A stretch of DNA of 64,000 nt from Styela clava. Its lineage: Eukaryota. This document shows positions 8,101 through 55,320 of this stretch, piece by piece. Where the stretch lies: contig NC_135259.1 in assembly GCF_964204865.1 (NCBI RefSeq), positions 11,160,001-11,224,000 on the forward strand, in the 5' to 3' direction. Both the position numbers and the translations under genes were made by a program. A model generated the notes under the pieces. It was given only the letters and a program-made list of their open reading frames with translations. It was not told the origin of the DNA and ran no database searches. Position 1 is the first letter of the stretch. Each line of letters begins with the position of its first letter.

Positions 8101-11100
8101 TAGACTGCCCAATATGGGAAGATGTCAAAGGTACATTTTAAAATATAGCTAGATAATATATGTTGTATTTTCTTGTTCGGAAAAGAAAGAGAGGATTTGG
8201 TTTATTCATTATAGAATATATTTTATAAATATTTTTAATTTCAGATATTTTCCAGCTTTACTATAACTTATATCCAGTAATGTGGAAAAACAACATAATC
8301 GACATGAATTCGTTCGAAGACGTTAAAAGTAAAGCCCATATGCTCAAAATGTCGATGTTTGAATTTGATATGGAAAATTCACGGTATTGGTATAAATGGC
8401 ATTGTTTTAAAGTAATAAGTATGATTATAGTACAACAGTCGTTTTCTCATATTAAAAGAGAAATATGGCATATTGATTTTAGTAGTACTGGCAAATTAAG
8501 CAGGTCCAAAAATATTATTTTTGAAGCGAGATTTCTGTGACAGTCTACAAATATCACTGATAAATTTCAGATACATGCCAAGACAACGGGATTTGTCATA
8601 TAGCAAAAGACGTCTTGTATGGAATTGGATGAAATGTGGAATGAGGAAAGGATCACTCAGTATAAGAGAAGGTAAATAGTACATTTAATATAAATCATAG
8701 GAAAGAAAAAAAATTTTTTTTCCGGTAAAAACCCAATGGAATTAAAAAGCAAGCCATAATTTTTTAATAATGTTTACTCATTGTTGAATGTTCCAATAAT
8801 TTTATTTTTTGCCGTCACCTTTAAGTGAAAATGAAGATGGATGTAACATACATTTTCATCTTATGTAGAACGTTACACAAATTTCGATGATATATATTTC
8901 ATTTTACATGAAGCAAAATAGCAATACAAAAAGGGCATTCATTATTGTACAAGTATGATGTATGTCGGAAATATCGAATTGTCAACTTTTTATTTCTAAC
9001 AATAAAACGTGGTACAAATTAGGTTAAGATGAATTTGAGATTTACCTCAAAATTCGAATTGTGCACCAGTCATCCTTAATTAATGTTAAGGGACCTTATA
9101 AAAACGTGAGTATGAGATCTTTCTTGTTAACACGTCTAAACATTTTTTTTGGTGACTATTGGACAATGATATCATTCAATTTACAACAGGATTTACCGGT
9201 ATGTATATAGATTTTGTTTGTTTATAAACTTTCAAACATGACATTGTTTGAAACTCTAAATACATATAGACAAATTTTTACCCAACAGAACGGACAATGA
9301 ATCTGTGTACTGGGGCGTCACTGCGAAAGAAAGTGGAAGAACTGAAACAAGACATTCAAAACGCAATTTTTGCAGAAATCTCGGTTATACCCCCGTATCT
9401 AACGGCATGGTTAAGTATAAAATGGAGTCGAGGTAGAAACAGAGAAGTTGCAGACATTCTGAAGGAAATACTACATGACGAAATGAGACATATGACGCTT
9501 GCTACTAATATTTTGAATTCGGTAAAATTAATATGAATCATATACTATGCTGCTAAGTAGTAGAAAGTGCCGGAACGTTTTTATTGTGTCGGAGGATTCT
9601 AGTAATTATTAATGTTAGTGTGATGCAGGGAGTCGCATTTGAGAACAACTTTTTTTTATTACCGTACGGTAATAGAACAATTACTATGATTGTATTTTAT
9701 TTGTAGTCGAATTTAATATATGTGGTATTAAATCGTAACATTTTTAGATCGGCGGAAAACCTGATTTCACAACAACCCCCCCTGCTTATCCTTCTACAAT
9801 AGGTATGGGAAGTTTCTATGGCCTTGATAAGGGGCATGTTCTTTCTCTCGGTCCTGTATCAATTGGTAGAATCAATGATGTGTTTTCCAGAATTGAGCAA
9901 CCGGCCAACGACAATGGAAAAGAGGTAATGAATAAATACTTCTTCAATTAAACCGCGGAAAGAGACACTATTCCTTCGAGAAAGTCAAAGTAAAATCACT
10001 TAATCACTCTGTTTGTGTTAATAGAAGTGGGCGCGCACGCTATTTGGAAATATGGTGCATGCATCCGATCCTGTACGGACATGTTAAATCAGGTCCACGA
10101 CTTTCAAGCCATATAGTGACAATTAAATTTTTTCGCGCACTTATGTTCTACACCTATTAGAACTCAAAATCGTAACAAATGTAAGTAGGTAACTGAGCAA
10201 TTCGCGTAAAGCTTACCGAGAATATTATTCAAATCACTTTTTTCAATCCTTAGCTGATGTCGTTCTTCGTCATTTTATGGAAAGTAGTATTGGCAGTTGA
10301 AAAGTACGAAGTGATGGAGTCAACAACAGAAAAAACTTTATTACAGGCCGTCAGAAAGTTGCACCAACATACGAACAAACCAAAATCAAATAAAACGTAC
10401 ATCTTTGAAAATCAGATGTGGCAAAGAATGAAAACCAAACAACAGAAGATAACTCATATTTGGCGGTTGATTAAAAAGTTTACTGGCGACAAACTGTTGG
10501 ATATTGCGAAACAAGAAATGCACACTATTGGTGGCTTTTACGCTAAATTAGCTCTCAAACTTGCTAACGTGGAGGCTTGCGTTAAACTTCAAAAACAAGA
10601 AAGTGGCGGAAACTCGTATTCTAAAAATAGGATTCGTGATCGAACAATATTCATAGGGAATTCTGCTAGGCAGCTAAAATCAAAACATTGGTACAAACGC
10701 CCATCCACAAATACGGAAATAGATTGCACGGCTGAAAAAATATCACGCACTATGGGTAATTTTCCACCTCCTGACAGCGCTCATGGTAGAGAAGCACTCT
10801 GGAGATTTGCGAGAAAAGAAAACAGGTCAATGAGCGAGAATAGCAATGAAAACTGTGGTTCCGTAAATGATCTGGAGAAAGCACCTACTACAATTTTTGA
10901 AGTTACCAGTCTTTCATCTGCCCTTCGTTCTCTAATAGAGATAGTTTACGAAGGGGGAGGGGGTTCCGCTTGCTCACCTTATGAAGAATTATATGGAAAC
11001 GACTCAACAGTTTTATCTCATTTTTATCGTTTTCAAGAAATAGTACATGGTCGCAAACTTATAAAAGTTCCTCGGGATAAAGTTTTGCCAACTTACCAAT

Positions 11101-11480
11101 GTGTTAACATGTCAAGATGGTGTGCTAATTTTCACAGCCAATGGAGGTATTGTTACGCTGGAGATCGTATAACATTTTATGAAGATGGCGTTTGGTCAAT
11201 TTCTTCGGAAAGTAAATTCAATCCATATGTTTCTGGTACCTACGTACAGAGACTTGACTGGCAGTTTTCGTTGATTTATTCGAGATTATTACGATGCTTG
11301 GAGAAAGTCTTTAATGGCAATCCTGACCAAATTAAAATTTGCATGGTGGAAATGTACGAGTTAACGATGGTTGGTAGAGAACTAGTTGCAACAAATATTC
11401 AACATACGAATAACACCGACGGGCAGTCTGTAGCAACACACAAACGGGGTTGTCCTACATTTTACTATATTTCCGACTAG
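2160..11480 (+). CDS. Secreted TSP1-domain + VioB/RebD/StaD-like (iminophenylpyruvate dimer synthase-like) protein with C-terminal ferritin-like domain; 16 coding exons, ~1215 aa
   Basis: Phase-consistent exons: 2160-2238, 2710-2856, 3211-3332, 4163-4286, 4655-4838, 4999-5132, 5528-5747, 6129-6359, 6592-6801, 7091-7258, 7979-8130, 8245-8383, 8571-8671, 9289-9521, 9748-9924, 10254-11480 (3648 nt). Signal peptide MFKYCIFLLLLCII and TSP1 WSSWSSCSSTCGYGHESRKRTKC. Motifs I recognise from VioB-like proteins occur in order: WPRLHFYG..ADVSTRNN, WNPDGSGNF, LVDVDTDWQ..EIWGL, GRISGTIG, LDGQVY, PIWEDV..IF..Y..LYPVM, YMPRQRDLS. Ferritin-like motifs: AIFAEISVIPPYLTA, DEMRHMTLATNILNSIGGKP, IVYEGGG, SHFYRFQEI. 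The exon 9 acceptor is non-canonical (GG). Confidence 0.8.
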
Positions 11481-14338: not shown

Positions 14339-14806
14339 GCGGAGGAGGGTATACATCACAATTCATATAATATTCAATTTGTGCATTTGCGTGAGAATTA
14401 CGTGAGATTGTTCAATAGTAATTTTTGGATTTGGATTTGAAGTTTTCAAATTCAGAACAACCGTTTTAATTCCGTTTAATTTTGCACCAAATGCGACGTA
14501 TGTATAAGGCCGTAACAATTGCATGCAAAATTTGTACCCCAGAAAGTTATTGTTGGACATTTTGATAAATTTATTTCAATAAAGGTTGATCTTTTAAATT
14601 TATGATTAAGGATATACTTTGAATTATCAAAATTGTCAAATATTATAAATCGAAAAAGGAATAATATGAGACTGTAAATTATGCGCTGTAATTTTCTGGT
14701 CTGTAAATGATTGAAATCATGGATTTCTAAAAGCATTGAATATTTTGTTTTCAATTATTGCAGTTATACTTATCGATATACAAAGGAATCTTGAATAAAT
14801 CTCAAA

Positions 14807-17589
14807 ATGAAGTTTCTCATTGTTGCAACAATTGCTGTGCTATTTTTGGCCGCAGAAAGTCGCAGACTGCAACCCTCTCAATGCGAATCGGGAAGAATCG
14901 TAATAGCTTTGATGGGAATCTGCCCTATGGAAGGTAATTTGAATCATTTCATTTTAGAAGAAACATTGATATTTATTGACGCAAACATTGTAAAAAAAAT
15001 CTATCATTCAGATGCGGAAATCTGCAGAGATATTTGTGACGGAACAGAAGTTAAAGATATAGAAGAATGCTCTCTCACGCCAGAATGTTGTTGGAACGGT
15101 CATCATTGCGCGATGAAAATTGTAAGATATATTTTAGACGAGCTTTTATAATTTACCACTTCAAAATTCATATTCGAAAAAATTAAAACTCACTTGGTAT
15201 ATATATTAGTAGTCATTGCAATGATTTCACGCCAACCAACTGTTTTAGTTTATCATGATTAAAAAATGATTATTCTAATTTAAATTATTGTTAATCCATA
15301 ATCAGAATTTCCATACACGACCTTACAGCTTCTGAATAAATAATGCTTATCTGATATTCGTGAAATGGCTTTGTTTTAAACAGTCGCCGTTACACAAGTT
15401 ACCATATTATCACAGTCTTGTTATTGTACATATATGTTGAAATAAGGCAAATTAAAGTTTTATTATGGTGAGATATAACACATGCAAATGCTTTATAGAT
15501 CCCATCCTATATCGTGGATAAAGACGACACAGTGGAGGAAGAAAATCATGACAAGAAAGTCGACACCTCCGGGGTACGTTTTTTCGTCTGTTGAATAATA
15601 CACCATTTTAGTTCTTAATTCTTGAACAAATAAGATACTGTCAATTTTGAAAGTAACTTAATTTAGTATGTTGCGTAGATTGGAAATTCGTGTTTGACAA
15701 GCACGTAATATCGCAAAATAAGATTTTCATTGAGTTGCTTCTTATTTACAAATTACAGAAGACGCTTTCCCGTGTAAGACGCCAGTCCTCTAAAAGAAAT
15801 GAAATTAGCATTGAAGCTGTAAGTACGGAAGTGAATAATTGTTGTTGTTTTATGATCTTTTACAATCAGACTAACCGATTAACTTGCTTATCTAACAGAA
15901 CGCCGAAGGAAAAGACGGCAGAGTTGATGCTGAATATAGAAGGGTAAATACTATTATGGTATTTTTTAAATTTTTTGAGTCACAAACACAATCCTAAATT
16001 TCAAGCGGGATAATTCTCCTGGGCAAAAAACAGTGCCAAATGATGCATACTAGCACTATTGATGCCATGGAATATTTTAAAAGGAAATTAGTTTGGAACT
16101 ACCGAATTATTTACATATCTATCAGGGTATTACAGAAACTTTCAGTAATCCCGTAATTGTATATGAAAAATTCACATCAATATTGAATACAAATATTCCT
16201 TCTATTTTCAGAACAACAGAGATTCGAAATATACGATTGGTGGAGTGAGTCGTTTATCTTCTAGTATGTTGCAATGATAGAATTTGATGCTGAGTCCGTA
16301 TGAATTTGCGAACAAGATTTTTGGCTTAATTCAAAGAATTGTTTATTACATTGTCAGATTCATATTATTGTAAATATCATCTCGCGCAGAGCGAACAGCA
16401 GTTCTACAAGAAAAACACTGTTAATAGTCAGTCACAAAATCTGTCAGCATTTTACTTGAAAAACTGATTTAGGAAGATTTCGAAAATCATAAATCGGACT
16501 TTATTGGTTGTCGGTATACCGTACAATTTTTGTATTCCCCGTTTCAATAAACTACATACTATTATATATAAGAAAATTGTTCAGATGCTAGAACGACCCG
16601 AATGTATTATGGAGACGTTTTTTCTTCTCCCTGATACGACATCATAGTCGTATATAAATAAAACATGTATAATTATTTAACCATGACCTTATTTCCTCAG
16701 CATGCAACAACTTACGGTGATTATGGAGTTCGTGGATCCTATGAAAAGGTAAGTTTAGATTTGAATTTTTAATATGGAGATATTTCGATACCACATCAGT
16801 GGATATATTTTTGTTTTTGTCACATCATGTTAACTCCTGTATCATTTCATTGACGTCAAGTTTCCTAGATGTGGGAAATTTGAGCAGCCAATCTGGTGAA
16901 AGTACGGCCTTAATTTTGTTCACGACAATACTGTTAATTTACAAACAAAAGTATTAACTTTCTCTTGGGCATCTTGCGCATCGCGCTATTTGCCTGCGTT
17001 TGACTGCTTAATTTGTTGACATTTTTAAATTTAATATTTCAGAAACTTGGCCGTGGACGCTTTGGAGTAAGCGGAGTAAGTATTTATTTTTTATTTTCTT
17101 TATTGCCGTGAAAAGCATATGTTTTCATTAGGTGTGTTTGACAAGGAACGGAGACAAGGAACATGTCTGATGTCTAAATACAGCCATGTATGTAACAAAT
17201 AAGTTATTCAAATGACTGCAATGTTTTAGGTTCTGTGTGGTCGAATCAATTGTTACAGTTTTGTCGTTGACTTTTGTGGATTGTCATTTTTCATATTGTT
17301 TCAAATTTCCTCAAACATCTTCATTTACCAAAGCGTGTAGTTAGGTATATATGAAATCAGTTTTTGGTTTCAATTAGCTGGACACAAATCTTACTGTACA
17401 AATCTTTTAGCGCAGCAAACATAGTCTAAAAAAAATCAATGCAGTTCCAATAAAAATAAAATCATTAATGTGAAGTTTGGGGCTGTATACTTAGCTGCAT
17501 TTATTTATGAATATTGAATTTACATATAACAGGGATACAGCAGATATGGGGGATCCCGCATTGGTGCAAGATACAGCTTTCCATTTTAA
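14807..17589 (+). CDS. Prepro-peptide A (195 aa): signal peptide, 8-Cys domain, acidic spacer, furin site RVRR, 83-aa cationic Gly-rich attacin/diptericin-like candidate antimicrobial peptide
   Basis: Exons 14807-14933, 15012-15121, 15499-15573, 15759-15818, 15899-15943, 16212-16244, 16701-16748, 17043-17075, 17533-17589, all GT-AG. Predicted mature part: QSSKRNEISIEANAEGKDGRVDAEYRRNNRDSKYTIGGHATTYGDYGVRGSYEKKLGRGRFGVSGGYSRYGGSRIGARYSFPF. Exon sizes and phases match paralog B. AATAAA at 17770. The gene structure is well supported; the function is inferred. Confidence 0.85.
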
Positions 17590-17927
17590 ATTATACGAAG
17601 ACGAAGATGAATGGACGAACAGATCAGCATTTCATCCATTTAATGAAATTTATCTACCTATACCCATAAACATTCATTCATTAGACACATAAATATATTC
17701 TCATTAAATTGCTAACTTCCATGTAGCTTCACATTATTCAGATTCATTTCTTTCATATAGATTGGCATCAATAAACTCTTACTCCTGCATAAATAATTTG
17801 GTGTTTAAAAAATTGGGCGTGGTATTTTGAAGAGCATACCTTTAATAGGACCAGAACCTCAAGCCGGAAACGACAGTCTATTCTATAGCTTTGCCAGTAA
17901 ATAGTTATCAGCATGTGAGGTATAAGT

Positions 17928-18025
17928 TGAGAACTCGGAGGGAGAGAGAGAGAGAGAGAGAGTCGGAGTCAAATATTTTTACAACCCGGACGCGGAGCCA
18001 ATTGTTAGAGTTCTCCGACTCCACA
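17928..18025. repeat. (GA)n microsatellite inside a small GGAGTCGGAG / CTCCGACTCC inverted-repeat element
   Basis: GA run at ~17942-17963 and inverted GAGTCGGAG motifs; related motifs at ~33373-33421. Confidence 0.5.
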
Positions 18026-21000
18026 GTCCACAGATTTTGTTGGTGAAGGCTACTTGACTATAACTTCTGATTGTTTATATCTCATGGATAAAAGTCTACT
18101 TGGTATCGTTAAATACTTTTATAAATGCAGTGTTATTCATGGGAAACTTTTTTAAATACAGCCCAATAAGCTAAGATTATCACACGATCAACTTGCAATC
18201 GGCTGTCTAACTATTTATTAAATGATACTTCAGATGTCGCAAAAATAAGAAGTTTTTACATCAAAATCATTGTTTTAGTCCAAATAATTGTTTCAAGCAT
18301 CAAATATTTATCATGTTAATATCGCATCGTGTCTGTGCTTGTTTTCACGATCTTAATTTGATTTCAAATGTTATAATTAAAAATAGGTGACTATATCAAT
18401 TTAAAATCTGAAAAATGCAGAAATTTGTTTCCTGTATTTATCAAAAAATGCAATTTGAAAAATTCCAAACGCCACAATGTTTGACTTCAGGACGAGTAGA
18501 AATGTACAGTTATTCATAGCAAAAAATTTGATTGAATTTTACCAAAAAAAAAATTTACTTGAAGAGTGAACGTTGGTTATCCGTTACAAAAAAACATTTA
18601 TTTTTAAAGTAGAGCAGTGTACACATACAACAAACTAACTCAAACGCAATCAGTTGCAGGAACAGCAAAATCTAATAACAACATAACAAGAATTGTATTA
18701 CCTAACGAGTAATAGCGAACAGATGAACATGTTTTGTTTATTAGGGTTTCAAAAGCATTTATAGATGGAATATTTTAAGATAAAATATTTATTTGCAAAG
18801 TTGCAGACAAATTTATTTCTTATTTCTATTTTCAAAATTAAAATTGAAACCTATTTGAGAATATAATTACGGAATTAGTATTACAAGCATCATATTAATG
18901 TTCCATACCAAATGCAGTTCAACGAGTTATTTCACCATCTGCTAAGCCTTTTCTTTAAGAGCCTCAATATTGTTCCTTCGCCGCACGTCTAGATGGTATG
19001 AATTGGATACATTATTGTACCGTGTATACACAAGGTTCGTTTGCTACGGTCTTGAAGATTTTCCGCTATTTAGGTGAAGTAAAATACTTTCAAATTTGAT
19101 TTGCTTGAAAAATGATTTCAAACCTGTCAAATTAGCAGTTCTTCGCATGGGTATTATTTTTAGATTCGACTTCATGTGAAACAGCGTGCTCGTATTTTGT
19201 ATCGTATTAAGCGAAAAGGTGTGTTTAAGTCATCAACGACTATTTATTGGAAAGCGTCACAAGACAATATTTGCGATAACTCTGTTGTATTAGTTTCTAT
19301 TACCTTTGCAAAACACATTCTCAAATTCCATTTTCACCGCTGGCCAATGGCATTGAGCTTATCATTTTCATCTTTGCAAACAAACTACACCACTGGTTCC
19401 CAACCGCCGACCAGCGTCCACCTACCTGTCGGTCCGCGAAATATATATCATTGCAACAAGGAATTGACGGCCTGCCCATTTCTTTTGTTTTACATCCTAT
19501 AGATGCGTAAACCAAACTTGAACAGAGGTCCTAGTTAGGCCTATGTTGAGCCTTGAACGGTTTGGTGTTTCGTCTATGGCGTCATAACGGTACATTGTAA
19601 CGCAGCAGTTCGAGAGCAGATAGTTGTGGTTTTTAACCTTTGAATGCCTTCCGAAACCCTACGTTACTCTGGAAGCTTTCGTCGAACCCCAATGTTTTGA
19701 AAAGTTGAAATCAGGGGCGCAACCAGAAATATATGAAGGAAGGCTAATTTACTGCAAGGTTATAGAAAATACAACCGCCTTTGATCAACAGAGTAGGAAT
19801 TTGTTGCGTTATTATTACGGAAAGGTTAAGTTTTAATGGCTAAATTTGAAAACATTTCCAAAAGATTATCAACCCCAAACCACTTGAGTGGGCCACTGGT
19901 TATATGCATAGCAACATAAATTGCGATAAAAAAAACAACTACTCGTAGTTAATCGAACAGGTCTCGTTCCTGGTTGAGCTATTTCACAAAAGAAATCTCG
20001 CAATTGCAAAAACTTTTCGGACAAACTCGGAACTACCACGAACATTGTGGTGTAAACCTAGATAACCATACACCGTGTTGAAAAAACTTCTGTGCCACGT
20101 TAGCGTCCGCGGTAGGAGACTTGTTGGCAGACCAATAAGTGTGTGACTGGGAAGGGAAAAAGTTACAGGGCAAAAATAACAACTTTGAAAATCCGAAAGC
20201 TAAAATGATGTATTGAAAGCGTTGTGGCCCAAGTCATTCGCACCCCAGACTTCAAGGAACAATCTGGTGGAGATAAGAGGATTGTTTTAAAGAAATATAG
20301 ATACGGTATGACACAGCACCAGGACGTCCACATTCCTCAATTTCCATATTCATTCGCGTGATCTTACCTCCCATTTTCAACTTGTGCTTAAAAGAGCTAC
20401 ATTTTACTAGTAGATTATGATTATGAACGTTACGCAAATATTCAGCTTAAAATCAAAGGGTTTCTCATATTATTCTAAGATATTTCCATAATCAAGTGGC
20501 ATCTTAAAACGCGTGCGACGTTAAAGTTAAGTTTTTGATTAACCGGGATATAAGATATAACTGTAATTGACAGTTCCAAAAAAACTTGTATCGTGTGGAA
20601 CTGCACATAGTTAACCCCTGGAATAGCTTCACCAAACCCCAGGGGTTCGATCGAACCAAGATTTAGAAACACTGGTAGTACCTGCCTTATTGAATTTTAA
20701 ACTGGTAACTCGTCTGGGAAACCTTTGGATTGTTAATCCCCTTTCAAAGGATTGGTACAATTTAAACGCTGTTGAGAAAGAATCGATGATTGAACCTATT
20801 TTCGATACCACGTTGATGTTGGATGATAAAAACTTGAATTTGTTCACAGTTTTGATGAAGAACTTCTTTAACGACACGTTTTTCTTTTCATATCAATCAT
20901 TAGCCCAAATTTCTGATTACACGCATTCAAATTATTTTAAAATAAATAGATATTTAGCATAATAAAGTGCCGATACAATTTTATAGTTGAAAATTAAAAA

Positions 21001-21922
21001 ATGCAAGAAAAAGCTAGATTTGGGTAATACAAGTAAAGTAAAAAATTGATGAGTCAATGCTAATGCTCATGACAAGCCTTACTGAAATAGTTTATTATGC
21101 ATTGCGTAATTCAAATTTGTTTTCGGCTTCGTGTCGTGCAAATGCGTATTTTGAAATTTGTTTTTGGCTAAGTGTCGTGCAAATGCGTATTCTGTGGAAT
21201 TATGGTTGTTTTCAATTCACAGGAATCGAATCCTTAATTTCCCAAATTATTTCCAACAAAAATGTTCAAGATTAACTTTATTATAAATCGAAACCAATCC
21301 AGGCTGAAAACGATTGAAATGGAGCAGTTTCTATATATACAAAATAAAGAAATTGTGTTTGCGTTCACAGCAAAAAATAATACCATGATGTAATACTGGA
21401 TTGACATCAGAATAAATATATCCAAACTGCATCTCCTGCATATCGAAAATTTGTTAAGTATTGCTCAACGACCATCGGCAAATGAATAATTAGGTTTCGA
21501 CCGCATTTATAACTGAAATAAATTGTAGCTCAAATTGAAATTGCAAATATCAAAACTAATAGAAACTTATTGAATATTATAAATACCAAATTGGACCAAT
21601 TTGCAAGCGTTGAAAATTATATAAATACCAGTACTGTTTTGGTGATACACATTTTTAATTAGTGATAGCTATGATGTTACAGTGAAGCAGAAGAAATTTA
21701 TTATCACTTTACCACGAATTTATAATTGTTGATATGAAAATCTCTCGAAATTATTAGAATATTTCATGCTAAACAAACTATTAATTCTTTGTCAATTTAA
21801 AAGTAGTTCAACAGTGGCTCATGCAAAATCAAATAATCATTTATTTCTATGTTTCCATTCTTTTATTAGTCTGGCAAGTTTTTATCGTTACAACGGATTC
21901 GATCAAAACTGTTGATAACAAT

Positions 21923-24487
21923 ATGAAGATCCTACTTCTAGCGGTGGTAGGTGTGCTTTTTGTTGCAACAGAAAGTCGGAGACTCAATCCATCTCAATGC
22001 GAATTGGGTAAAATAATGATCGCTATATCTGGAATCTGCCCGCTCAAAGGTAGATCAAACATTTTTATTTATTTAAACATTTCTGGTACATAGTGAAAAT
22101 GTAAAACATACAGTGGTCAAATATTCTTTCAGATTTTCGTACCTGTGTAGATGTTTGCGATGGGAGAGAAATCACTGATTTAGTCGAATGCTCTGTTACC
22201 CCCGAATGTTGCTGGACCGGTGACCAATGTACAAGGAAAGTGGTGAGTTTTATTTACTTTTACTTTTATTTATTTCTATATAGTACAAGCACGTATTAAT
22301 AACTGATCTTTAATTTGTAAAAACATTTTTGCTCCCCTTATACGATGCGTGCTGTTTCTTGCATTCCGAAATATGAGGCATTGAATCTTTTTGATCTTAA
22401 GATTACATTCTTGAATGTCAATGAAGAATATGACGGTTCGTCTAAAAGAGATGAAGATTCAACTGAGTCGTTCCAGGTAGGAGTTTATAGCCAATTATCC
22501 TTATTTAATTGTTTTACATAATACCAGAGTCACAGTTGATCAACGTCTTCTGCAGATATTTGCATTAGGCTATCTTATTAAATTGACAAAGACAAAGCTT
22601 TTTTATTAAACTTGAAAAATCGAGCCCATAAAACAATAAAAACAGCTTTCGAAAACAGACAAAAACACAAAATATGACCGAGAAGCCTAAAACTAATACA
22701 ATGCAATCTTTTACCAACGTTTTATTTTTTTAACTAGTTTTTTGCTTTTGTTGGTTTAAAGTTAATATTCTTTCACAGAATCAAGTATCCCGAGTTAAAC
22801 GCCAGCTACCAACGCGACCGCCTACATTTATGCCACGAATAACATTTATGCCACGAATAACACCGAAAAGACCTGATATAACTATTGCAGCAGTAAGTTG
22901 ATTTAGTCCATTTTCCTGGTATATTTATATCGTATAAAAATCAATTTATTTAAAGATTGAATATAGAAACAAAAATCAAACTATTTAACGACGAATATAA
23001 ATTAGACTAAAATGTCTGTTAGGGATTTTTCGAGCTTGAGTTCGGGAGAAAATGAGTATGTTAATAATATTCACCTAATTTTTGAATTCTTACTAAAAGT
23101 AAAGTTGTGAAAAACGTTTTGAGTTGACTAATTCGAAGTTTTATTTTGTTGGAAACACGAATTCATGATAATTTCTATTTAATAAACAGATGGCTCGTGG
23201 GAAATATTTCAAAGTTGATGCCGAATACCGTGACGTAAGTTTAAATTTGTATATTTTCAAGCTAAAATCTTTATTACCTACATGCATTTATAAACCAAAT
23301 TAATAGATGAATAACAAAAATTCAAATAATTTTCAATTTTAGAGGAACGACAAATATAATTGGATGGTAGGAGGGGTAAGCACAATATAGATTATATATG
23401 TTCATTTTTTGTTTACATTTTCAAGCGCGCCATGTAACGTAACGGCAATAGTGACAATGTCCCAGTTTAGATTAGACTCCCAGATTGAACATTGGCGACA
23501 ACTGAAATTTTTATCGAGTTCCTTTTTAATATTTTGGTTTCATTATTAATTTAAATATAATGTTGTTAAAATGAGCATACTATAAGTCTAATTTATATAA
23601 AAATATTATTGGTTTTAAGCTAATATGACATTTTTTAACAAATTTATTCAGCATACATCAAATTTCGGGGACCATGGAGTTCGAGGAGCTATTGAGAGAG
23701 TAAGTTCATTACTATCACTTCAAGTTTTCAATAATCAAGGCTTGTAATAATCTTTCATGATGCAACTTCATTTGGTGGCTTGCACGATTACTATTTTAAA
23801 GAAATTTCATTCTTTCCCATACTCATTCATTAATTAAACTTTTTGTATTCGATCAGTTAATGTTGTAAAGATATATCTCATGCCAAATTGCTGACGTGCA
23901 TTACGATCGTCACTGTTTCATTAAATTTTCATATCATATTTATTTGTGTAATATGTATTTAAATTGATTCAACATTTTTTGAATTTCAGAAAGTTGGACC
24001 AGGATATTTTGGTGTAAATGCGGTAAGTTAGTACTGTTCTTTATGTTGCATTGAGTAAATACGTTAGTCGGTGTAGATGTGAAATAAAGACGCTATCAAT
24101 TTAATACAATGCAATTAGGCAATGAATTTCACTAAGAAAATGGTTTTAAATAACGATTTATACTTCAATCATATGCGACACCATTTGCATTTTGAGTTTA
24201 CCTCATTGAGATAAACTTACTACTTACTTACTAAGAAGTATTTAGCTTGTTCAATCTATATCGTATACTACAATGAATACCCAAGGTCTCCTGAGTGCAA
24301 ACAAAGCTCTAGGAATTGTGGGAATATAACTGATGTATAATTTGTATCGTATGCCGTTTCAATTTGTTCAGTGTAAGCTGTCATAAAAATGACGAGACTA
24401 ACAACAACTGTTTAATAGGGACATAGTACATTTGGAGGATCTCGAGCTGGCCTTAGTTTCAGAATACCATTTGGAAGAAAACGTTAA
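21923..24487 (+). CDS. Prepro-peptide B (217 aa), paralog of A: furin site RVKR, Pro/Arg-rich N-terminal segment, Gly-rich domain, C-terminal amidation signal F-GRKR
   Basis: Exons 21923-22049, 22133-22242, 22402-22476, 22779-22892, 23190-23234, 23343-23375, 23652-23699, 23990-24022, 24419-24487, all GT-AG. Predicted mature part: QLPTRPPTFMPRITFMPRITPKRPDITIAAMARGKYFKVDAEYRDRNDKYNWMVGGHTSNFGDHGVRGAIERKVGPGYFGVNAGHSTFGGSRAGLSFRIPF(GRKR). Confidence 0.85.
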
Positions 24488-25547
24488 TGACTACATGCTT
24501 CATATTTGGATATAGCTTTCATGTTCATCTCATTTCTAATATTACGTAAACCACATATATTCAATGACCACACGTACTGCTTCTATATAAACACTTAACC
24601 ATATATATATAACCTAATAAATATGTAACTTCAAAAAATGTTTTATTGTCATTTATCTAATGGTTTGAAGGGGTAGTGGATTTTCAAAAAAACTATTATT
24701 ATCGGTGGATTTTTGGATTGAATGACATATTTTTCGTCATTGCTTCAAGCCTGAGAGCTAAAATAAATAGTCGCGTATGCAAAGGCGCAGGAAGGAATAT
24801 TATATTAGTTCGTTCGAGTGACCAAGAAGTAATCGAATACAGGATATCTAATCTGCGATGAAGCACCTATTTAGGTTAATATGTCGGACAACTTGCTTCG
24901 TCTATTTACGGATTATTGAATTGATAAAATTGCTTTTAATAAAAATCAAACAAATAACAGATATATAGATGTTTCTGTTCCAAAGCCAAATAGATTTCCA
25001 CGTGTTATCCACGAGTCGATAACCAATTGCTCGTTAATGATCAAAAAATTATCAAATACCCAAAACAGTAACAGCGAGTTTTTATTTTATATATGATCAA
25101 GTCATGTGAGGAAATTTGCCACTTCGAAATGCAACGAATTAAGTGAACAATCGTCTGAATAAAAAGCACTTCTTATTTTGCAATTAATTAAAAGGATTAA
25201 TTTGTTTCTTGACTGAAAACTTAAGTTTACCTTAACTCAAACGGTGTTGTATTCCGAATGGGTATATTTTTGCTGTTAGTCTGAATAGCATGATATGACA
25301 TACGAAAAAGATAACAAGACGCAATTAATTTAGTTTGGCACATACATCAATAATACCAAATCAAGTCTTCCTGTTGTTGGACATAATGGTAATTCCATAT
25401 ATTTCACAATCAATCAGAAAATTATCCTAAAAAATATTGCACCTATATTTACAATAAACTTGTGAAGTACTTGAATTTAAAACAAGAGAGCACTGATCAA
25501 ATAGATGAAATAGAAAGCCAAAACGAAGAAGTATTAAATCTTTTACA

Positions 25548-37089: not shown

Positions 37090-38184
37090 TTAGAATCCTG
37101 TCGTGGCAACAGTGGAAACTTCTTTGACAGAGGTTGAGTGTTGTTGTGGCAATTGATTCTGCGAACGTATACAATTGACTATGACGAACAGGATTGATTT
37201 CCAGTCTTTCAGTTCCAGAAATATTGCAACATTGTTCACGAGAGCGTTCATTTCAAATGCAGTCAACGCTATGCTTTGTGCTTTCAATTCGGGAAATAAA
37301 TTCATATATAAAGTAATTACGAAAAATGCTATAACATCGCTCACTATGCATAAAGCAGACAAGAAGCTTGATTTCTTCAGAATTGGAACAATCGAAGAGA
37401 TTTTGGAATCAAGTGCTGACTTTTTGGGGATTGATTTCAAGCTGGGATTATTCAGAATTATGGATTTATTGTGGTTCTGATTTAATTTACTTTTAGTATT
37501 TTTAACTTTCTTACAAAGTGGACTCACAAAAAGCAACAATAGTGTTATCTGACCAAGGACTACCAGTGCGACTTGACATAAATGCATGATTCTTGTAAAT
37601 GGGTACACAATTAAAATGCATCCAATAGGCCCACCTTCGGTCTTGACCACGTATAAGTGCATAAACATTGCATATGCATTAGTAATGACTATAGCTACCA
37701 AACAAATGGGACTCACGAAGCGGAAAAACCATTCTGGCATTCGAAGTGCACTTCTTACATTTGGTCTGGAATAGAGAATTTGTTGCCGAAACCACAAAGT
37801 AAGATACACGAAAAAAAGGCTGATGACATATACAAATTTGTATCCGAACAATCCGACACCACACATGATGTCTTCTGTTACGTTAATATCGTTATATAAC
37901 ATTAACTGAATCATAGATATTCTTGGAATATACAGGATAGTTGTCGAAAACACCATTATAAATAATAGGTTGTTTTTCCCATTGGTCGTTTTTACTCTCA
38001 ATCGCTTATATTTTGTACCAAACAGAATCATCGAGACCAATATCCATGTAGCCACGAGAAAAGATGAAATATTCAGCACCTGGCATATACCGAATACCAC
38101 GAGACGTATCTGGATTCCATTTGCATCGTATGCATCATTTGTTTCATATGTGTATCCTATGCTGCTTTCTGTGACGTTTTTCAT
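37090..38184 (-). CDS. Intronless seven-transmembrane GPCR-like orphan receptor, copy 1 (364 aa)
   Basis: Seven hydrophobic segments, N-terminal N-glycosylation site (NVT), Cys at the start of TM3 and in ECL2 (GGPIGC), LWFRQ at the DRY position, Lys-rich third loop, Ser/Thr-rich tail. Confidence 0.85.
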   Translation of the reverse strand: MKNVTESSIGYTYETNDAYDANGIQIRLVVFGICQVLNISSFLVATWILVSMILFGTKYKRLRVKTTNGKNNLLFIMVFSTTILYIPRISMIQLMLYNDINVTEDIMCGVGLFGYKFVYVISLFFVYLTLWFRQQILYSRPNVRSALRMPEWFFRFVSPICLVAIVITNAYAMFMHLYVVKTEGGPIGCILIVYPFTRIMHLCQVALVVLGQITLLLLFVSPLCKKVKNTKSKLNQNHNKSIILNNPSLKSIPKKSALDSKISSIVPILKKSSFLSALCIVSDVIAFFVITLYMNLFPELKAQSIALTAFEMNALVNNVAIFLELKDWKSILFVIVNCIRSQNQLPQQHSTSVKEVSTVATTGF

Positions 38185-42829: not shown

Positions 42830-43936
42830 TTATAATCCAGTCGCGGCAACAGTGGAAACTTCTTTAACAGAAGTTGAGTGTTGTTGTGGCAATTGATTCT
42901 GGGAACGAATACAATTGGATATGACGAACAGAATTGATTTCCATTCTTTCAGTTCCAGAAATATTGCAACATTGTTCACGAGAGCGTTCATTTCAAATGC
43001 AGTCAACGCTATGCTTTGTGCTTTCAAGTCGGGAAATATTTTCAAACATAAAATAATTACGAAAAATGCCATAAGATCGCTCACTATGCATGAAGCAGAC
43101 AAGAAGCTTGATTTCTTTAAAATTGGAACAATGGATGAGATTTTGGAATCAAGTGCTGACTTTTGGGGGATTGGTTTCAAGTTGGAAACACTCAAATTTA
43201 CTGTACTGTAATGTGATTTAGGGTGGTTCTGATTGAATTTACTTTTGGTATTTTTAACTTTCTGACAAAGTGGAATCACAAAAAGCAACAATAGTGTTAT
43301 CTGGCCAAGGGCTACCAGTGCGACTTGACAAAAATGCATGATTCTTGTAAATGGGAACAAAATTAAAATGCATCCAATAGGCCCACCTTCTGTCTTGACC
43401 ACGTATAAGTGCATAAACATTGCATATGCATTAGTAATGACTATAGCTACCAAACAAATGGGACTCATGAAGCGGAAAAACCATTCTGGCATTCGAAGTG
43501 CACTTCTTACATTTGGTCTGGAATAGAGAATTTGTTGCCGAAACCACAAAGTAAGATACACGAAAAAAAGGCTGATGACATATACAAATTTGTATCCGAA
43601 CAATCCGACACCACACATGATGTCTTCTGTTACGTTAATATCGTTATATAACATTAACTGAATCATAGATATTCTTGGAATATACAGGATAGTTGTCGAA
43701 AACACCATTATAAATAATAAGTTGTTTTTCCCATTGGTCGTTTTTACTCTCAATCGCTTATATTTTGTACCAAACAGAATCATCGAGACCAATATCCATG
43801 TAGACACGAGAAAAGATGAAATATTCAGCACCTGGCATATGCTGAATACCCAGAGACGTATCTGAATTCCATTTGCATCGTATGCATCCTTTGTTTCATT
43901 TGTGTATCCTATGCTGCTTTCTGTGACGTTTTTCAT
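42830..43936 (-). CDS. Intronless seven-transmembrane GPCR-like orphan receptor, copy 2 (368 aa)
   Basis: Very close paralog of 37090-38184; differences concentrate in ICL3, TM6/ECL3 and ECL2. Confidence 0.85.
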   Translation of the reverse strand: MKNVTESSIGYTNETKDAYDANGIQIRLWVFSICQVLNISSFLVSTWILVSMILFGTKYKRLRVKTTNGKNNLLFIMVFSTTILYIPRISMIQLMLYNDINVTEDIMCGVGLFGYKFVYVISLFFVYLTLWFRQQILYSRPNVRSALRMPEWFFRFMSPICLVAIVITNAYAMFMHLYVVKTEGGPIGCILILFPFTRIMHFCQVALVALGQITLLLLFVIPLCQKVKNTKSKFNQNHPKSHYSTVNLSVSNLKPIPQKSALDSKISSIVPILKKSSFLSASCIVSDLMAFFVIILCLKIFPDLKAQSIALTAFEMNALVNNVAIFLELKEWKSILFVISNCIRSQNQLPQQHSTSVKEVSTVAATGL

Positions 43937-45615: not shown

Positions 45616-48600
45616 TTACTTTCCCTTCTTACCGGAGGACATCTTACTTCCTTGATGTTGTTTTTTGCTTCTTGTGTGAAAAACAACTGATTTTGCAGTA
45701 GTTGGGGAAATAGGAGTTGGCATAGCTTTGGATATCGTTGGTTTTGCACTAAATGGAGTCGTACGAACAGAGGGAGTACCTTCCTTGATTGCTGTCGTTG
45801 GTTCAGACAAATAAATTTTGTTCCGGGATGTAGCGTTATTTTCAGTAACTTCTGTAGTTAACTTTACCTCTGGGGTTTCTGTCGACCGTTTTTTCTCTTC
45901 ATTGAGTTTTGAAGAGGTGGTTGGTGCTGGGCGCGTCATCTGTGATTTTTGTCTAGTTTGATTTGGGGTATGGAAGTTTTTATTTGAGGATGTAGTTGTG
46001 ATAATCGAAGAAGATGTCTGTATATTTTCAGTCGTCGTCGGTTTCGGGACCCTTGATCTAGCTGTAGGTCTTCTTTTAGGTTTTGAAATTCTGGGTCGAG
46101 TTGGCTTGGTTTTATTGTTAACAGGTTTGCGTGTAGTTTGATTTAGAAGTGGACCTTTCGATAAAACAACGGGTGTCGTTTTTGGCTTAGAAATTCTAGA
46201 ACGGCGAAAAATGGATATTTTTGGCATTGTTGGCTTACTTCTGAATAGCAGGCGTGATAATGTAGTAGTAGAAGGTGGTACCGTGGTAACGTTGAGCTTC
46301 TTTACAAAGTTTTTATATTCTTTGCGACGTATTACAGAACCAAATCGACTTTGGCCAATAACAGTAACTTGTAGTTTCACAGGCTTGTTTATCAATTTAG
46401 CAGTTTCCTCTCTATCGTTAATTGTAGAGGGCTGAAAATAAACAATATATCAAAGCTATCCTTGACACTTTGATTGTCCACTCTAAATAACGATACTTCA
46501 TTTCAGCTATTGAAATAGTTTCGTCTTTGAGTGCAGTGCACGGACCTTACTCTAAGCAAACATCTGTATATAAAGCTGTAAGAGATTGTACAATTTATTA
46601 ATTTGTTGAATAGCTGGCACCATAGATTCTTGTTGATATCATATTCAATAAACAAAACATACAATACACGTGTGAAAAAAGCACAATGTCGGGTATGATT
46701 TATCCAGAGAAATATGTTATAACTAGCAAAACCCATACAAAATACAGACAATATATTTGATATTTCTAATTCAATGTTTTTAAACTACTCACGTGTGGTT
46801 TTACTGTCAACGTCATAACATCTGATGACCGACGACCATCCATTCCAGTAACCGTTAGAATAAATTTATACGTCCCTTCACTCAAATTAACAACATTCAA
46901 ATCACGTTGTGTTGTATTCTAAAACCGTCATATTGTAAATTGTTATACTGTGGTGAAATTCCGATACATGTATTTGCATTGAATTACTGGTCGTATTTAA
47001 AAATCTAGTTTGCCAATACGATTTATTTTAAAATTAGATTATTAATATCTGATTTGGAGTTGAATTTCTGGGAGAAGGAAATTCTCTTAATTACATTTAA
47101 CTTACCGATACAGACATGCCACCAATGTCACCATATGCGATTGGGGCCCACCATCGATATCTTTTTACTGAGCCCTTTGTATTAATAGCAGAAATTGTTA
47201 TTCTGTTTTGGGGTAATGTTATTGTAATGTCTGGACCAGCATCAGCAACAGCATGAAGTAGATGAGCTGCAAGATAAATATTACTGTGAATTATTTTTTT
47301 TTGCAAAAATAATATGCAAATAATATCCGGTCCTGTACCACTCAAAAATACCCTAAACAATTAATAATTAGGGCACATAAAACGTTTGATTTTAATATTT
47401 TCTTATCGTTTTTGTCTCACTTTTACATGTTTGTCCATCTTCTTGTAGCGTATAATCTTCATAGCACTCGCAGCGAACTGATGTTTTGTTTATTGGAATG
47501 CAAATGTGATCGCATCCGCCATTAAAATCTCGACACACGGGTGCCACGTTTCGCATAGGTGTTTCTGGTATTGTCGTTGGAGCGGCAGTTGTGGCGATAT
47601 CAGGAGGTAAAGGTTCCGCTTCTTTATCTAATTACATGTTACAAAATAGAAACAAGCTGTAAAAGTATGTCTTCGATTTATCCCCTTTTAAAGAAAAATC
47701 AATTAAGCAAACAAATATCAAGCAATTTTTATCTGAACCCAAAATGCATGGTTTTAGATTACTTTAATCATTAAATTTACTTTAGATGAAAAGCATAAAA
47801 TATCCGCTTGTTCCAAAACAAACAAAAGCTCTTTAGAGAAGTGAAAATAAACAAATGACGTTAGTTTTCATTTTGCGGTTACTGGAAATAGTCGGCAATT
47901 GGTACGACGTTACATAGTTTTGACGTAACGTATTCTGTTTTTATCTGATAATGTCGTTTGGTACTATATATACAAATTTTGTAGCTTATTTTTATATATA
48001 TTAATCTATAAACTATTTCATTCTTTTGGCTGGAGCTATATATTTTTTCTAATTCTTCTTTCCTGCCAATAGCCAGGTTTTATTGTATGTCTTGGGTCCA
48101 CTGAGTGCTGACAAACTCTTTAGGGAGAATAGTTTAGGTGTTTGGCTAAACGTCATCTTTAAAATTACATTCAAATGATATTAATCTTATGTTGATTTCA
48201 GAATATGTAAATGTAGCCTAATATCATAATATGACAATAGACTTGAAGTTAAATTATATATCTGCACCAAGAGTTGACTTAAACTACTCAATATATAATT
48301 TCCTATATCTAATCACCTGTAAACAGCTACAGGTATATAAACCTAAGATGGGAACCAATATTTACCGCATCAACCCATTACTGAAAATTAAAAAAAATAA
48401 CTCACAATCCGGGGGATCCGTCAATCCACAATCCATCATACCATGATTACATCTTTCTGAATTGCAACAGCATCTACAAAAATTTGTTGGATCTTCCCGT
48501 TGAGAACAATTTGCTTTTAGTGCGCTCTAAAAATAATGCAGCTTCCCGCATGAGCTATTAATATCCTTATTGCAATTATCTATAAGATTGATAATATAAT

Positions 48601-54621: not shown

Positions 54622-55320
54622 ATGGACAACCAAGCCAAGTTGGTCTGGGAGAAATGTAACACAGTGTATAACAAATGTGACGGAGAAAAAGCTTTGATGA
54701 AAGCTTATGATGAGTGGGCCACGGAATACGATCGCGACCTTGACGTTTTAAATTATAGTTCTCCAAATCAAGCTTCACAATGTGCCTTGAAATATTTAGG
54801 TTGTGGCGAATCGACAAAAATACTCGACGTTGCATGCGGCACTGGACTAGTCGGAGAATTTTTACGTAAAAACAATTTTAAAGGACTATTACATGGGATT
54901 GATGGCAGTGCTGAAATGCTTAATGTTGCCAGAAAAAAGGTGATCTATGATGATTTATTCACTCAATTTATCTTGCCTGGAAAGCCTATTATGCCTAGTC
55001 CAAGCTTGAAGTACGATGGTGTAATGTGCGTTGGAGCAATAACTAAGAATCATTTGGATCCCAAAGTATTGGAAGATTTTCTGAATGTTTTGATACCTGA
55101 AGGAATTATTTTGTTTGTTTTATCAAAAAGTAGAATCAATGTGGATGTGGCAAAAACTGTTGATGAAGTTTTAAAATGTCTGATTAATTCTGGAAAAATT
55201 GAAGAACTCGAAGTTCGCAGTATCGAAAGTGCATTTCAAATAGAAGACGACGATGTACCCAATAATATTCAGATTGAAACCTCCGCAAGTAATCACATTT
55301 ATTGCTATAAGAAAAAATAA
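54622..55320 (+). CDS. METTL27: Class I SAM-dependent methyltransferase, METTL27/WBSCR27-like, single coding exon (232 aa)
   Basis: YDEWATEYDRDLDVLNYSSP N-terminal signature, motif I ILDVACGTGLVG, GIDGSAEML, YDGVMCVGA. Confidence 0.85.
   Translation: MDNQAKLVWEKCNTVYNKCDGEKALMKAYDEWATEYDRDLDVLNYSSPNQASQCALKYLGCGESTKILDVACGTGLVGEFLRKNNFKGLLHGIDGSAEMLNVARKKVIYDDLFTQFILPGKPIMPSPSLKYDGVMCVGAITKNHLDPKVLEDFLNVLIPEGIILFVLSKSRINVDVAKTVDEVLKCLINSGKIEELEVRSIESAFQIEDDDVPNNIQIETSASNHIYCYKKK

Follow-up and report, generated by a model that had tools for sequence, protein, structure and literature searches.

Attacins are pre-pro-proteins in which an RXXR furin site is combined with G domains rich in Gly, and diptericin has one G domain (PMC7924397). 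Antibacterial Gly-rich polypeptides of this attacin/diptericin type have been reported from insects; the Attacin_C domain has been reported from insects only, and attacins have one exon per G domain (PMC7924397). Here, two genes (A and B) are described from a 64,000-nt stretch of the genome of Styela clava (assembly GCF_964204865.1, contig NC_135259.1, positions 11,160,001 to 11,224,000 of the forward strand). This whole stretch is referred to below as the window, and coordinates are counted from its first letter unless a genomic contig is named. Both genes lie on the forward strand, and their predicted product is secreted by design, bipartite and charge-split: an acidic half with an 8-Cys domain is followed by a furin-type site and a basic, Cys-free, Gly-rich chain, which is a candidate antibacterial polypeptide.

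The antimicrobial peptides of ascidians have also been described as secreted pre-pro-peptides. Their acidic and basic parts are charge-balanced, and in the styelin, clavanin and botryllin type the signal peptide leads straight into a helical cationic peptide of about 20-35 residues, with an acidic propiece at the C-terminal end (PMC9966394, PMC11767717). A 2025 review on aquatic invertebrates names styelins, clavanins, clavaspirin, dicynthaurin, halocidin, halocyntin/papillosin, Ciona peptides and turgencins for the tunicates, and a Gly-rich family is not among the tunicate antimicrobial peptides in that review (PMC11767717). A preliminary description of the locus, made from the letters alone, had assumed a probably non-insect invertebrate host and had set the pair apart from the helical clavanins and styelins. 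Both statements hold: the host is an ascidian, and the candidate is a Gly-rich chain of 83-105 residues.

Gene models and predicted precursor

Gene A consists of nine exons. Exon 1 (14807-14933) contains the start codon, the signal peptide (residues 1-18, 14807-14860) and the first two cysteines, and ends in phase 1. The other six cysteines, in the pattern C-x3-C-x10-C-x5-CC-x5-C and with the motif TPECCW, are encoded by exon 2 (15012-15121). Exon 3 (15499-15573) encodes the acidic spacer, with an omega of about 0.9 against gene B, while exon 4 (15759-15818) carries the end of the spacer, the RVRR site (15771-15782), the Gln that follows it (15783-15785) and the start of the mature chain. The chain continues through four phase-0 microexons, namely exon 5 (15899-15943, 45 nt), exon 6 (16212-16244, 33 nt), exon 7 (16701-16748, 48 nt) and exon 8 (17043-17075, 33 nt), of which exon 7 holds the best-conserved mature block (GD-GVRG). 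Exon 9 (17533-17589) encodes the C-terminal alternating aromatic strand and ends with Pro-Phe and a TAA stop; an AATAAA signal is located 181 nt past the stop (17770-17775). The exon lengths of 127/110/75/60/45/33/48/33/57 nt add up to 588 nt and a product of 195 residues.

The first intron of gene A (14934-15011) is only 78 nt long, stop-free and keeps the frame with the split codon, and exon 1, intron 1 and exon 2 form a single open frame of 118 residues (14795-15148). Retention of this intron would add 26 residues within the Cys domain with the frame unbroken, a property that gene B does not have.

Gene B has the same organization. Its exon 1 (21923-22049) contains the start codon, the signal peptide (21923-21976) and the first two cysteines, exon 2 (22133-22242) the remaining six with TPECCW, and exon 3 (22402-22476) the acidic spacer. 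Exon 4 (22779-22892) is longer than its counterpart (114 nt) and holds RVKR (22791-22802), the Gln (22803-22805) and a Pro-rich mature head. Microexons 5 to 8 (23190-23234, 23343-23375, 23652-23699 and 23990-24022) measure 45, 33, 48 and 33 nt. For microexon 8, an exon of the right size could also be bounded by another AG/GT pair located 4 nt downstream (23994-24026); the position given here was chosen by its A-like alignment. Exon 9 (24419-24487) encodes the C-terminal strand and Pro-Phe, followed by Gly-Arg-Lys-Arg and a TAA stop, with an AATAAA signal 129 nt further on (24616-24621). The nine exons (127/110/75/114/45/33/48/33/69 nt, in total 654 nt and 217 residues) are intact, with canonical sites and without stop or frameshift. 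All 16 introns of the two genes are of the GT-AG type with pyrimidine-rich acceptors, and the start phases are identical (0,1,0,0,0,0,0,0,0). The nine-exon structure with matching exon sizes that had been described for the pair was thus confirmed by script, in its coordinates, splice sites and phases.

Most of the 54-nt length gap between the two fourth exons is accounted for by a tandem repeat in exon 4 of gene B (18 nt x 2.2 copies, 22824-22862), which codes for TFMPRI twice. The repeat is perfect, which points to a recent in-frame expansion.

The layout proposed earlier was found in both translations: a signal peptide (residues 1-18), eight cysteines, an acidic spacer, RVRR or RVKR, and a Cys-free chain headed by Gln. 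The cysteines lie within residues 26-75 and are spaced as C-x12-C-x7-C-x3-C-x10-C-x5-CC-x5-C. The acidic spacer (residues 80-108) comprises 29 residues, of which only 10% are identical between A and B. It is directly followed by the tetrapeptide RVRR in A and RVKR in B (residues 109-112), with Gln as the next residue. The string SRV[R/K]RQ has been kept in both genes amid this otherwise divergent spacer, which is the strongest sequence argument that the predicted cleavage site is used.

The two halves of the product differ sharply in charge. In A, residues 19-108 have a pI of 4.6 and the C-terminal chain a pI of 9.9. This chain of 83 residues (9.2 kDa) has a net charge of +7 and no Cys; it contains 15 Gly (18%) and 11 aromatic residues, including 8 Tyr (10%) and 3 Phe, and 13% Arg. 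The chain of B is longer (105 residues, with 14 Gly, 9 Pro and no Cys). Its first 25 residues form the Pro-rich head, which holds the TFMPRI duplication and resembles the Pro-rich N-terminal segment of some insect families. The charges in the preliminary description, +7 for A and +9 for B, agree with these values for A, and for B once the terminal RKR is trimmed; with the GRKR tail the chain of B carries +12. The B terminus, Pro-Phe-Gly-Arg-Lys-Arg, is a textbook signal for trimming and amidation. In both proteins, every second residue is hydrophobic when counted back from the last mature Phe (in B, the Phe ahead of GRKR), and such an alternation reads as the signature of a beta-strand.

Paralogy, annotation and the 8-Cys module

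Overall, the two proteins have 47% sequence identity, and dS is saturated at about 1.3. The omega values differ along the precursor, with 0.22 in the Cys domain, 0.29 in the mature chain and 0.91 in the 29-residue spacer; Fisher tests of dN against dS gave p values of 8e-6, 3e-5 and 1.0, respectively. This pattern indicates that the Cys domain and the mature chain are under purifying selection and that the acidic spacer is not. The microexons of gene B are therefore coding sequence kept by selection and not a chance look-alike of those in A. In exon-by-exon six-frame scans of the window, each A exon paired solely with its B counterpart, and matching mature modules of A and B scored z values of 7-14 against shuffles. 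Judged from their sequences, the two are real genes that stand in tandem and are paralogs of old date. Their upstream regions did not give a meaningful alignment, and the intergenic stretch (17590-21922) contains no convincing open reading frame. About 730 nt upstream of the start codon of B, at 21113-21191, a unit of 41 nt is repeated in tandem (1.9 copies, 92% match). It was also considered whether the mature chain is built from three repeats of a two-microexon module; this was rejected, as no internal repeat among the microexon modules was significant in shuffle tests (p 0.13-0.71).

The pair had been called hidden. This is not so for gene A, which is already part of the current RefSeq set of Styela clava: the spliced model agrees at every position with XP_077973411.1, a protein of 195 residues listed as "uncharacterized protein LOC120338146 [Styela clava]". 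Gene A has thus been annotated, without a name or function, and no publication naming LOC120338146 was found in the literature searched. An earlier RefSeq model, XP_039262017.1 (141 residues), has the junctions of exons A1-A5 (junctions 1-4 are shared) and ends early, with two unrelated residues after exon 5 and with microexons 6-9 missing. The current model with its 33-nt exons may be taken as indirect evidence that gene A is expressed, because gene-prediction pipelines are unlikely to place exons of that size without transcript support. The two models also represent two alleles. Of their 139 shared residues, 7 differ. The signal peptide and the spacer account for three differences each and the mature chain for one, and the Cys domain is unchanged; this 5% polymorphism at the protein level is high.

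Homologs were searched with four queries (the open frame of A1, intron 1 and A2; the whole of XP_077973411.1; its residues 113-195; and XP_039262017.1, which was run against the 1.84 billion representatives) in 5.8 billion proteins, 1.84 billion representatives, a metagenome scan and the PDB sequences. The searches returned only the Styela protein itself and one marine metagenome protein (P0003), the latter through the Cys module alone. This result applies to protein databases, which miss microexon genes, as illustrated by the truncated older model of A. Gene B entered the database searches as single exons, and the spliced form was compared in local scripts only. The B product was absent from the matches in the 5.8-billion and 1.84-billion protein sets, where it could have been missed through a length window in the first tool or through 50% clustering in the second. 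In the Styela clava genome (377 Mb, with the window on contig C13), the N-terminal exons matched only A, B and one distant locus (L003), and a DNA search with the mature region of A recovered only A itself. Single microexons are too short as genome queries to find paralogs, and A7 fails to recover even B. For annotation, the locus carries a warning: the last four microexons were dropped in RefSeq's older model, and paralog B was found in no protein set searched.

The Cys-rich half matches no Pfam family, in line with the earlier remark that the prodomain could not be recognized. It is, however, not private to the pair. A whole-library HMMER search revealed the same 8-Cys module at the N-terminus of P0003, a protein of 992 residues from a JGI marine metagenome contig with three TSP1 repeats. 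The third genomic copy, L003, is located on Styela clava contig C1 (13548859-13551957), in a gene that runs to about C1:13553675, immediately upstream of the best genomic match to the remainder of P0003. This gene (C1 13.550-13.554 Mb) is the Styela counterpart of P0003. The L003 module is divided between two exons, and their phase-1 junction has the position that it has in A and B. All eight cysteines align in P0003, and the second exon of L003 aligns with the last six. After the module, the L003 gene continues with Pro/Gly-rich sequence, further Cys domains and TSP1 repeats. The later domains of P0003 match about 50 more places in the Styela genome, which indicates a large family of TSP1-repeat proteins.

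P0003 and its Styela counterpart thus share with A and B the signal peptide and the pattern C-x12/13-C-x7-C-x3-C-x10-C-x5-CC-x5-C with the motif TP-CC[WF]. They differ in what follows. There, the module is succeeded by Gly/Asp/Phe-rich low-complexity sequence, Cys domains and three TSP1 repeats, whereas in A and B it is succeeded by the spacer, the furin site and the Gly-rich chain. In the simplest history, exon shuffling would have given the same two-exon cassette of signal peptide and 8-Cys module to a TSP1 protein of the matrix type and to the common ancestor of the pair.

Candidate roles of the C-terminal chain

We propose, at somewhat short of an even chance, that the C-terminal chain of A and B is a host-defence (antibacterial) polypeptide released from a two-part secreted precursor. 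In this mechanism, a furin-type convertase would cut after RV[R/K]R in the secretory pathway (trans-Golgi), and the newly exposed N-terminal Gln would cyclize to pyroglutamate. In B, the GRKR tail would be trimmed to leave a Phe-amide. Until release, the acidic half would mask the basic half and keep it harmless. The freed basic, Gly-rich chain, extended or beta-prone, would then act on the bacterial envelope in the manner of attacin, gloverin and diptericin, with B bringing an additional Pro-rich head that resembles the P-domain of diptericin. Rapid lineage-restricted evolution, tandem duplication and fresh in-frame repeat expansion are typical of immune effectors.

The preliminary description had read the pair as attacin/diptericin-like. 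The layout of the two proteins speaks for this, as both have a predicted furin-type RxxR site directly ahead of the mature chain, and this chain is Cys-free, Gly-rich and cationic, with a Pro-rich head in B. Leads in the same direction were obtained from the ESM atlas. For the whole protein, the nearest clusters were hymenoptaecin-like (0.84) and Attacin_C (0.83), and residues 113-195 scored 0.90 with Gloverin/Attacin_C, 0.89 with Attacin and 0.84 with Diptericin-D. These scores fall in the range that the tool itself grades as 'lead only', and the shared features (139-151) stay below the usual counts within a family.

Several results weigh against the proposal. The top atlas neighbours of residues 113-195 were three unnamed giant-virus clusters (0.91-0.93) of 70-residue proteins, and a Gly-rich cationic composition alone could drive such scores. 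A Pfam hmmscan of XP_077973411.1 and exon 4 of B (E<=10) did not reveal Attacin_C (PF03769), Attacin_N (PF03768), Gloverin (PF10793), Coleoptericin or another family; XP_077973411.1 gave two weak irrelevant matches only. A six-frame Attacin_C scan of the whole genome also returned nothing, although such a scan is uninformative for microexons. AlphaFold, run on a 6-row alignment from which the B exon rows were left out in the mature part because they misaligned as fragments, gave a mean pLDDT of 44.5. The Cys domain reached 63-74, and the mature part contained strands at about 31, which is not a confident fold. With this unreliable model, the fold comparisons (VIA-align wide, and a Foldseek search against the PDB) produced only noise (Z<=3.6, E>=3). 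A kappaB-like site (GGGRNNYYCC) was not present upstream of A or B, which is a weak negative. Lastly, the Cys-rich half is more conserved and occurs in other proteins, and may be the main functional part. The layout and the atlas leads thus favour the attacin/diptericin-like reading, while Pfam, the sequence searches and the fold do not.

As an alternative, the basic Gly/Tyr/Arg-rich chain might be a structural or adhesive matrix protein of the tunic, the holdfast or the larval papilla glue, with the Cys domain as anchor or cross-linker. The composition of the A chain given above, including its pI of 9.9, recalls mussel foot proteins that are small, cationic and rich in Gly and Tyr, the 8-Cys module heads an extracellular TSP1-repeat protein of the matrix type, and immune-type promoter motifs are lacking upstream of both genes. 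Moreover, Styela is a fouling, strongly adhering animal. We nevertheless consider this role unlikely. The aromatic positions swap between Tyr, Phe and His when A and B are compared, and this speaks against DOPA chemistry. Long, repetitive chains are the rule among structural Gly-rich proteins, but A and B have no significant internal repeat, and the conserved furin site, the N-terminal Gln and the amidation signal are features of a released peptide.

It is likewise unlikely, in our estimate, that the 8-Cys domain does the work, as a small secreted binding or signalling domain, with the Gly-rich chain as a minor or disordered tail. The domain has the lowest omega (0.22), no allelic difference and the only moderate pLDDT, and it is common to L003 and P0003. 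Since it is conserved like the mature part and is present in a TSP1 protein, the 8-Cys half may be a working domain and not just a propiece. The mature chain, however, is under clear purifying selection as well (omega 0.29, p 3e-5). In cathelicidin precursors, a conserved folded propiece is joined to a variable cationic C-terminal peptide that is freed by proteolysis, and there too the propiece outconserves the active peptide. The conservation pattern therefore cannot separate a defence role of the chain from a leading role of the 8-Cys domain. By analogy, the 8-Cys half may have a function of its own or be a conserved carrier, as the cathelin domain is in cathelicidins.

It appears improbable that A and B are precursors of the neuropeptide or hormone type, from which cuts at several basic pairs would yield small, partly amidated peptides. 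Although B ends with the Gly-Arg-Lys-Arg amidation signal and the mature chain of A contains KR, RR and KK pairs, the internal pairs are not conserved (RR faces RD, KK faces RK, and in B a Pro comes after the shared KR). In addition, A lacks an amidation signal, and the conserved blocks span the putative cut sites.

Within the defence reading, the Gly-rich chain could also be a true but very divergent homolog of the attacin/diptericin/gloverin G domain, either ancient in bilaterians or acquired by transfer. Attacin-type clusters are among its atlas neighbours, and the parts follow the same order, with a P-like head, a G-like body and a terminal aromatic strand (PMC7924397). This we find still less probable, for there is no HMM match in Pfam (E<=10), and intermediates are absent from the sets of 5.8 billion and 1.84 billion proteins. 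Furthermore, Attacin_C has been reported from insects only, and seven phase-0 microexons stand against one exon per G domain (PMC7924397). Last, the idea that B, or both genes, are a non-expressed relic or an annotation artefact, prompted by the absence of B from the protein sets searched, appears very improbable: B has nine intact exons with canonical sites and an omega well below 1 despite saturated dS, and RefSeq modelled A identically.

The preliminary description had left it between a homologous and a convergent family. There is no detectable homology, and convergence is favoured: the likeness of A and B to the insect proteins most likely reflects convergent design and not shared ancestry, because the gene structure is wholly different and the protein sets searched contain no intermediates. 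In a bolder version of the defence proposal, the C-terminal chains would be working antibacterial polypeptides, and chordates would have in A and B their first defence family of the Gly-rich attacin/diptericin style. It would have arisen independently of the insect families from phase-0 microexons and a borrowed signal-plus-8-Cys module, and the convergence would include the Pro-rich head, the Gly-rich body and also the alternating aromatic strand at the terminus. This version is possible but doubtful.

Neighbouring features and comparison with known systems

Elsewhere in the window, several open reading frames were noted. An uninterrupted frame of 232 residues on the forward strand (54622-55320) gives clear matches to class-I SAM methyltransferases (Methyltransf_25/11, UbiE/COQ5; E down to 4.5e-10) and is an intronless gene amid an intron-rich region. 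A forward frame of 407 residues (10257-11480) matches Ferritin-like (PF12902) at residues 206-263. Three frames on the reverse strand, 37090-38184 (364 residues), 42830-43936 (368 residues) and 45616-46395 (259 residues), gave no match in Pfam at E<=0.01; the first and second, which are of similar length, may be paralogs or derive from an element.

Should the proposed role of A and B be correct, tunicates, the sister group of vertebrates, would have an extra class in their defence repertoire. The pair would also be a clean case of convergent design, with the same precursor logic, another gene structure and no detectable homology. Its history would illustrate the making of a new effector gene, in which a two-exon signal-plus-Cys module is moved by shuffling and joined to a series of symmetric microexons.

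When compared to the antimicrobial peptides of their own animal group (styelins, clavanins, clavaspirin, botryllin, halocidin and turgencins), A and B share the charge-balanced secreted pre-pro-peptide. The known ascidian peptides, however, are short and helical or small disulfide peptides, whereas in A and B the candidate is a Gly-rich chain of 83-105 residues that comes after a Cys-rich domain. The order of the styelin/clavanin/botryllin type is reversed, with the acidic Cys-rich part first, and A and B do not belong to that type.

Cathelicidin precursors offer a second parallel, in that an acidic Cys-containing N-terminal domain is more conserved than the cationic C-terminal product. There is no sequence relation, and the predicted site in A and B is of the furin type instead of an elastase or proteinase-3 site. 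The propiece of A and B has eight cysteines and occurs on TSP1-repeat proteins as well.

In gene architecture, the pair resembles the micro-exon genes (MEGs) of schistosomes. These encode secreted products, have short symmetric exons between longer end exons, and vary by exon skipping. Exons 3-9 of A and B likewise start in phase 0, exons 5-8 measure 45/33/48/33 nt and the product is predicted to be secreted. The likeness is one of architecture class only: the phylum is another, a sequence relation is lacking, and the skipping variation is a feature of MEGs, while A and B are known from genomic models.

In precursor design, A and B match the insect attacin, diptericin, gloverin and hymenoptaecin families (PF03769, PF10793). 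Common to all is a pre-pro-protein in which an RxxR site of the furin type precedes a chain of 8-20 kDa that is Cys-free, cationic and Gly-rich, and B shares with diptericin a Pro-rich head in front of the Gly-rich body (PMC7924397). In contrast, A and B have no HMM or sequence match to these families, their host is a chordate and their activity is putative. The short propiece peptide of the insect proteins is replaced by a folded 8-Cys domain, and the mature chain is spread over six exons, including phase-0 microexons of 33-48 nt. Gene products A and B may therefore work like attacin, but they cannot be filed as attacins. Furin-released, Gly-rich cationic polypeptides would be the known kind to which they belong by design, and the variant in Styela clava would be the new one.

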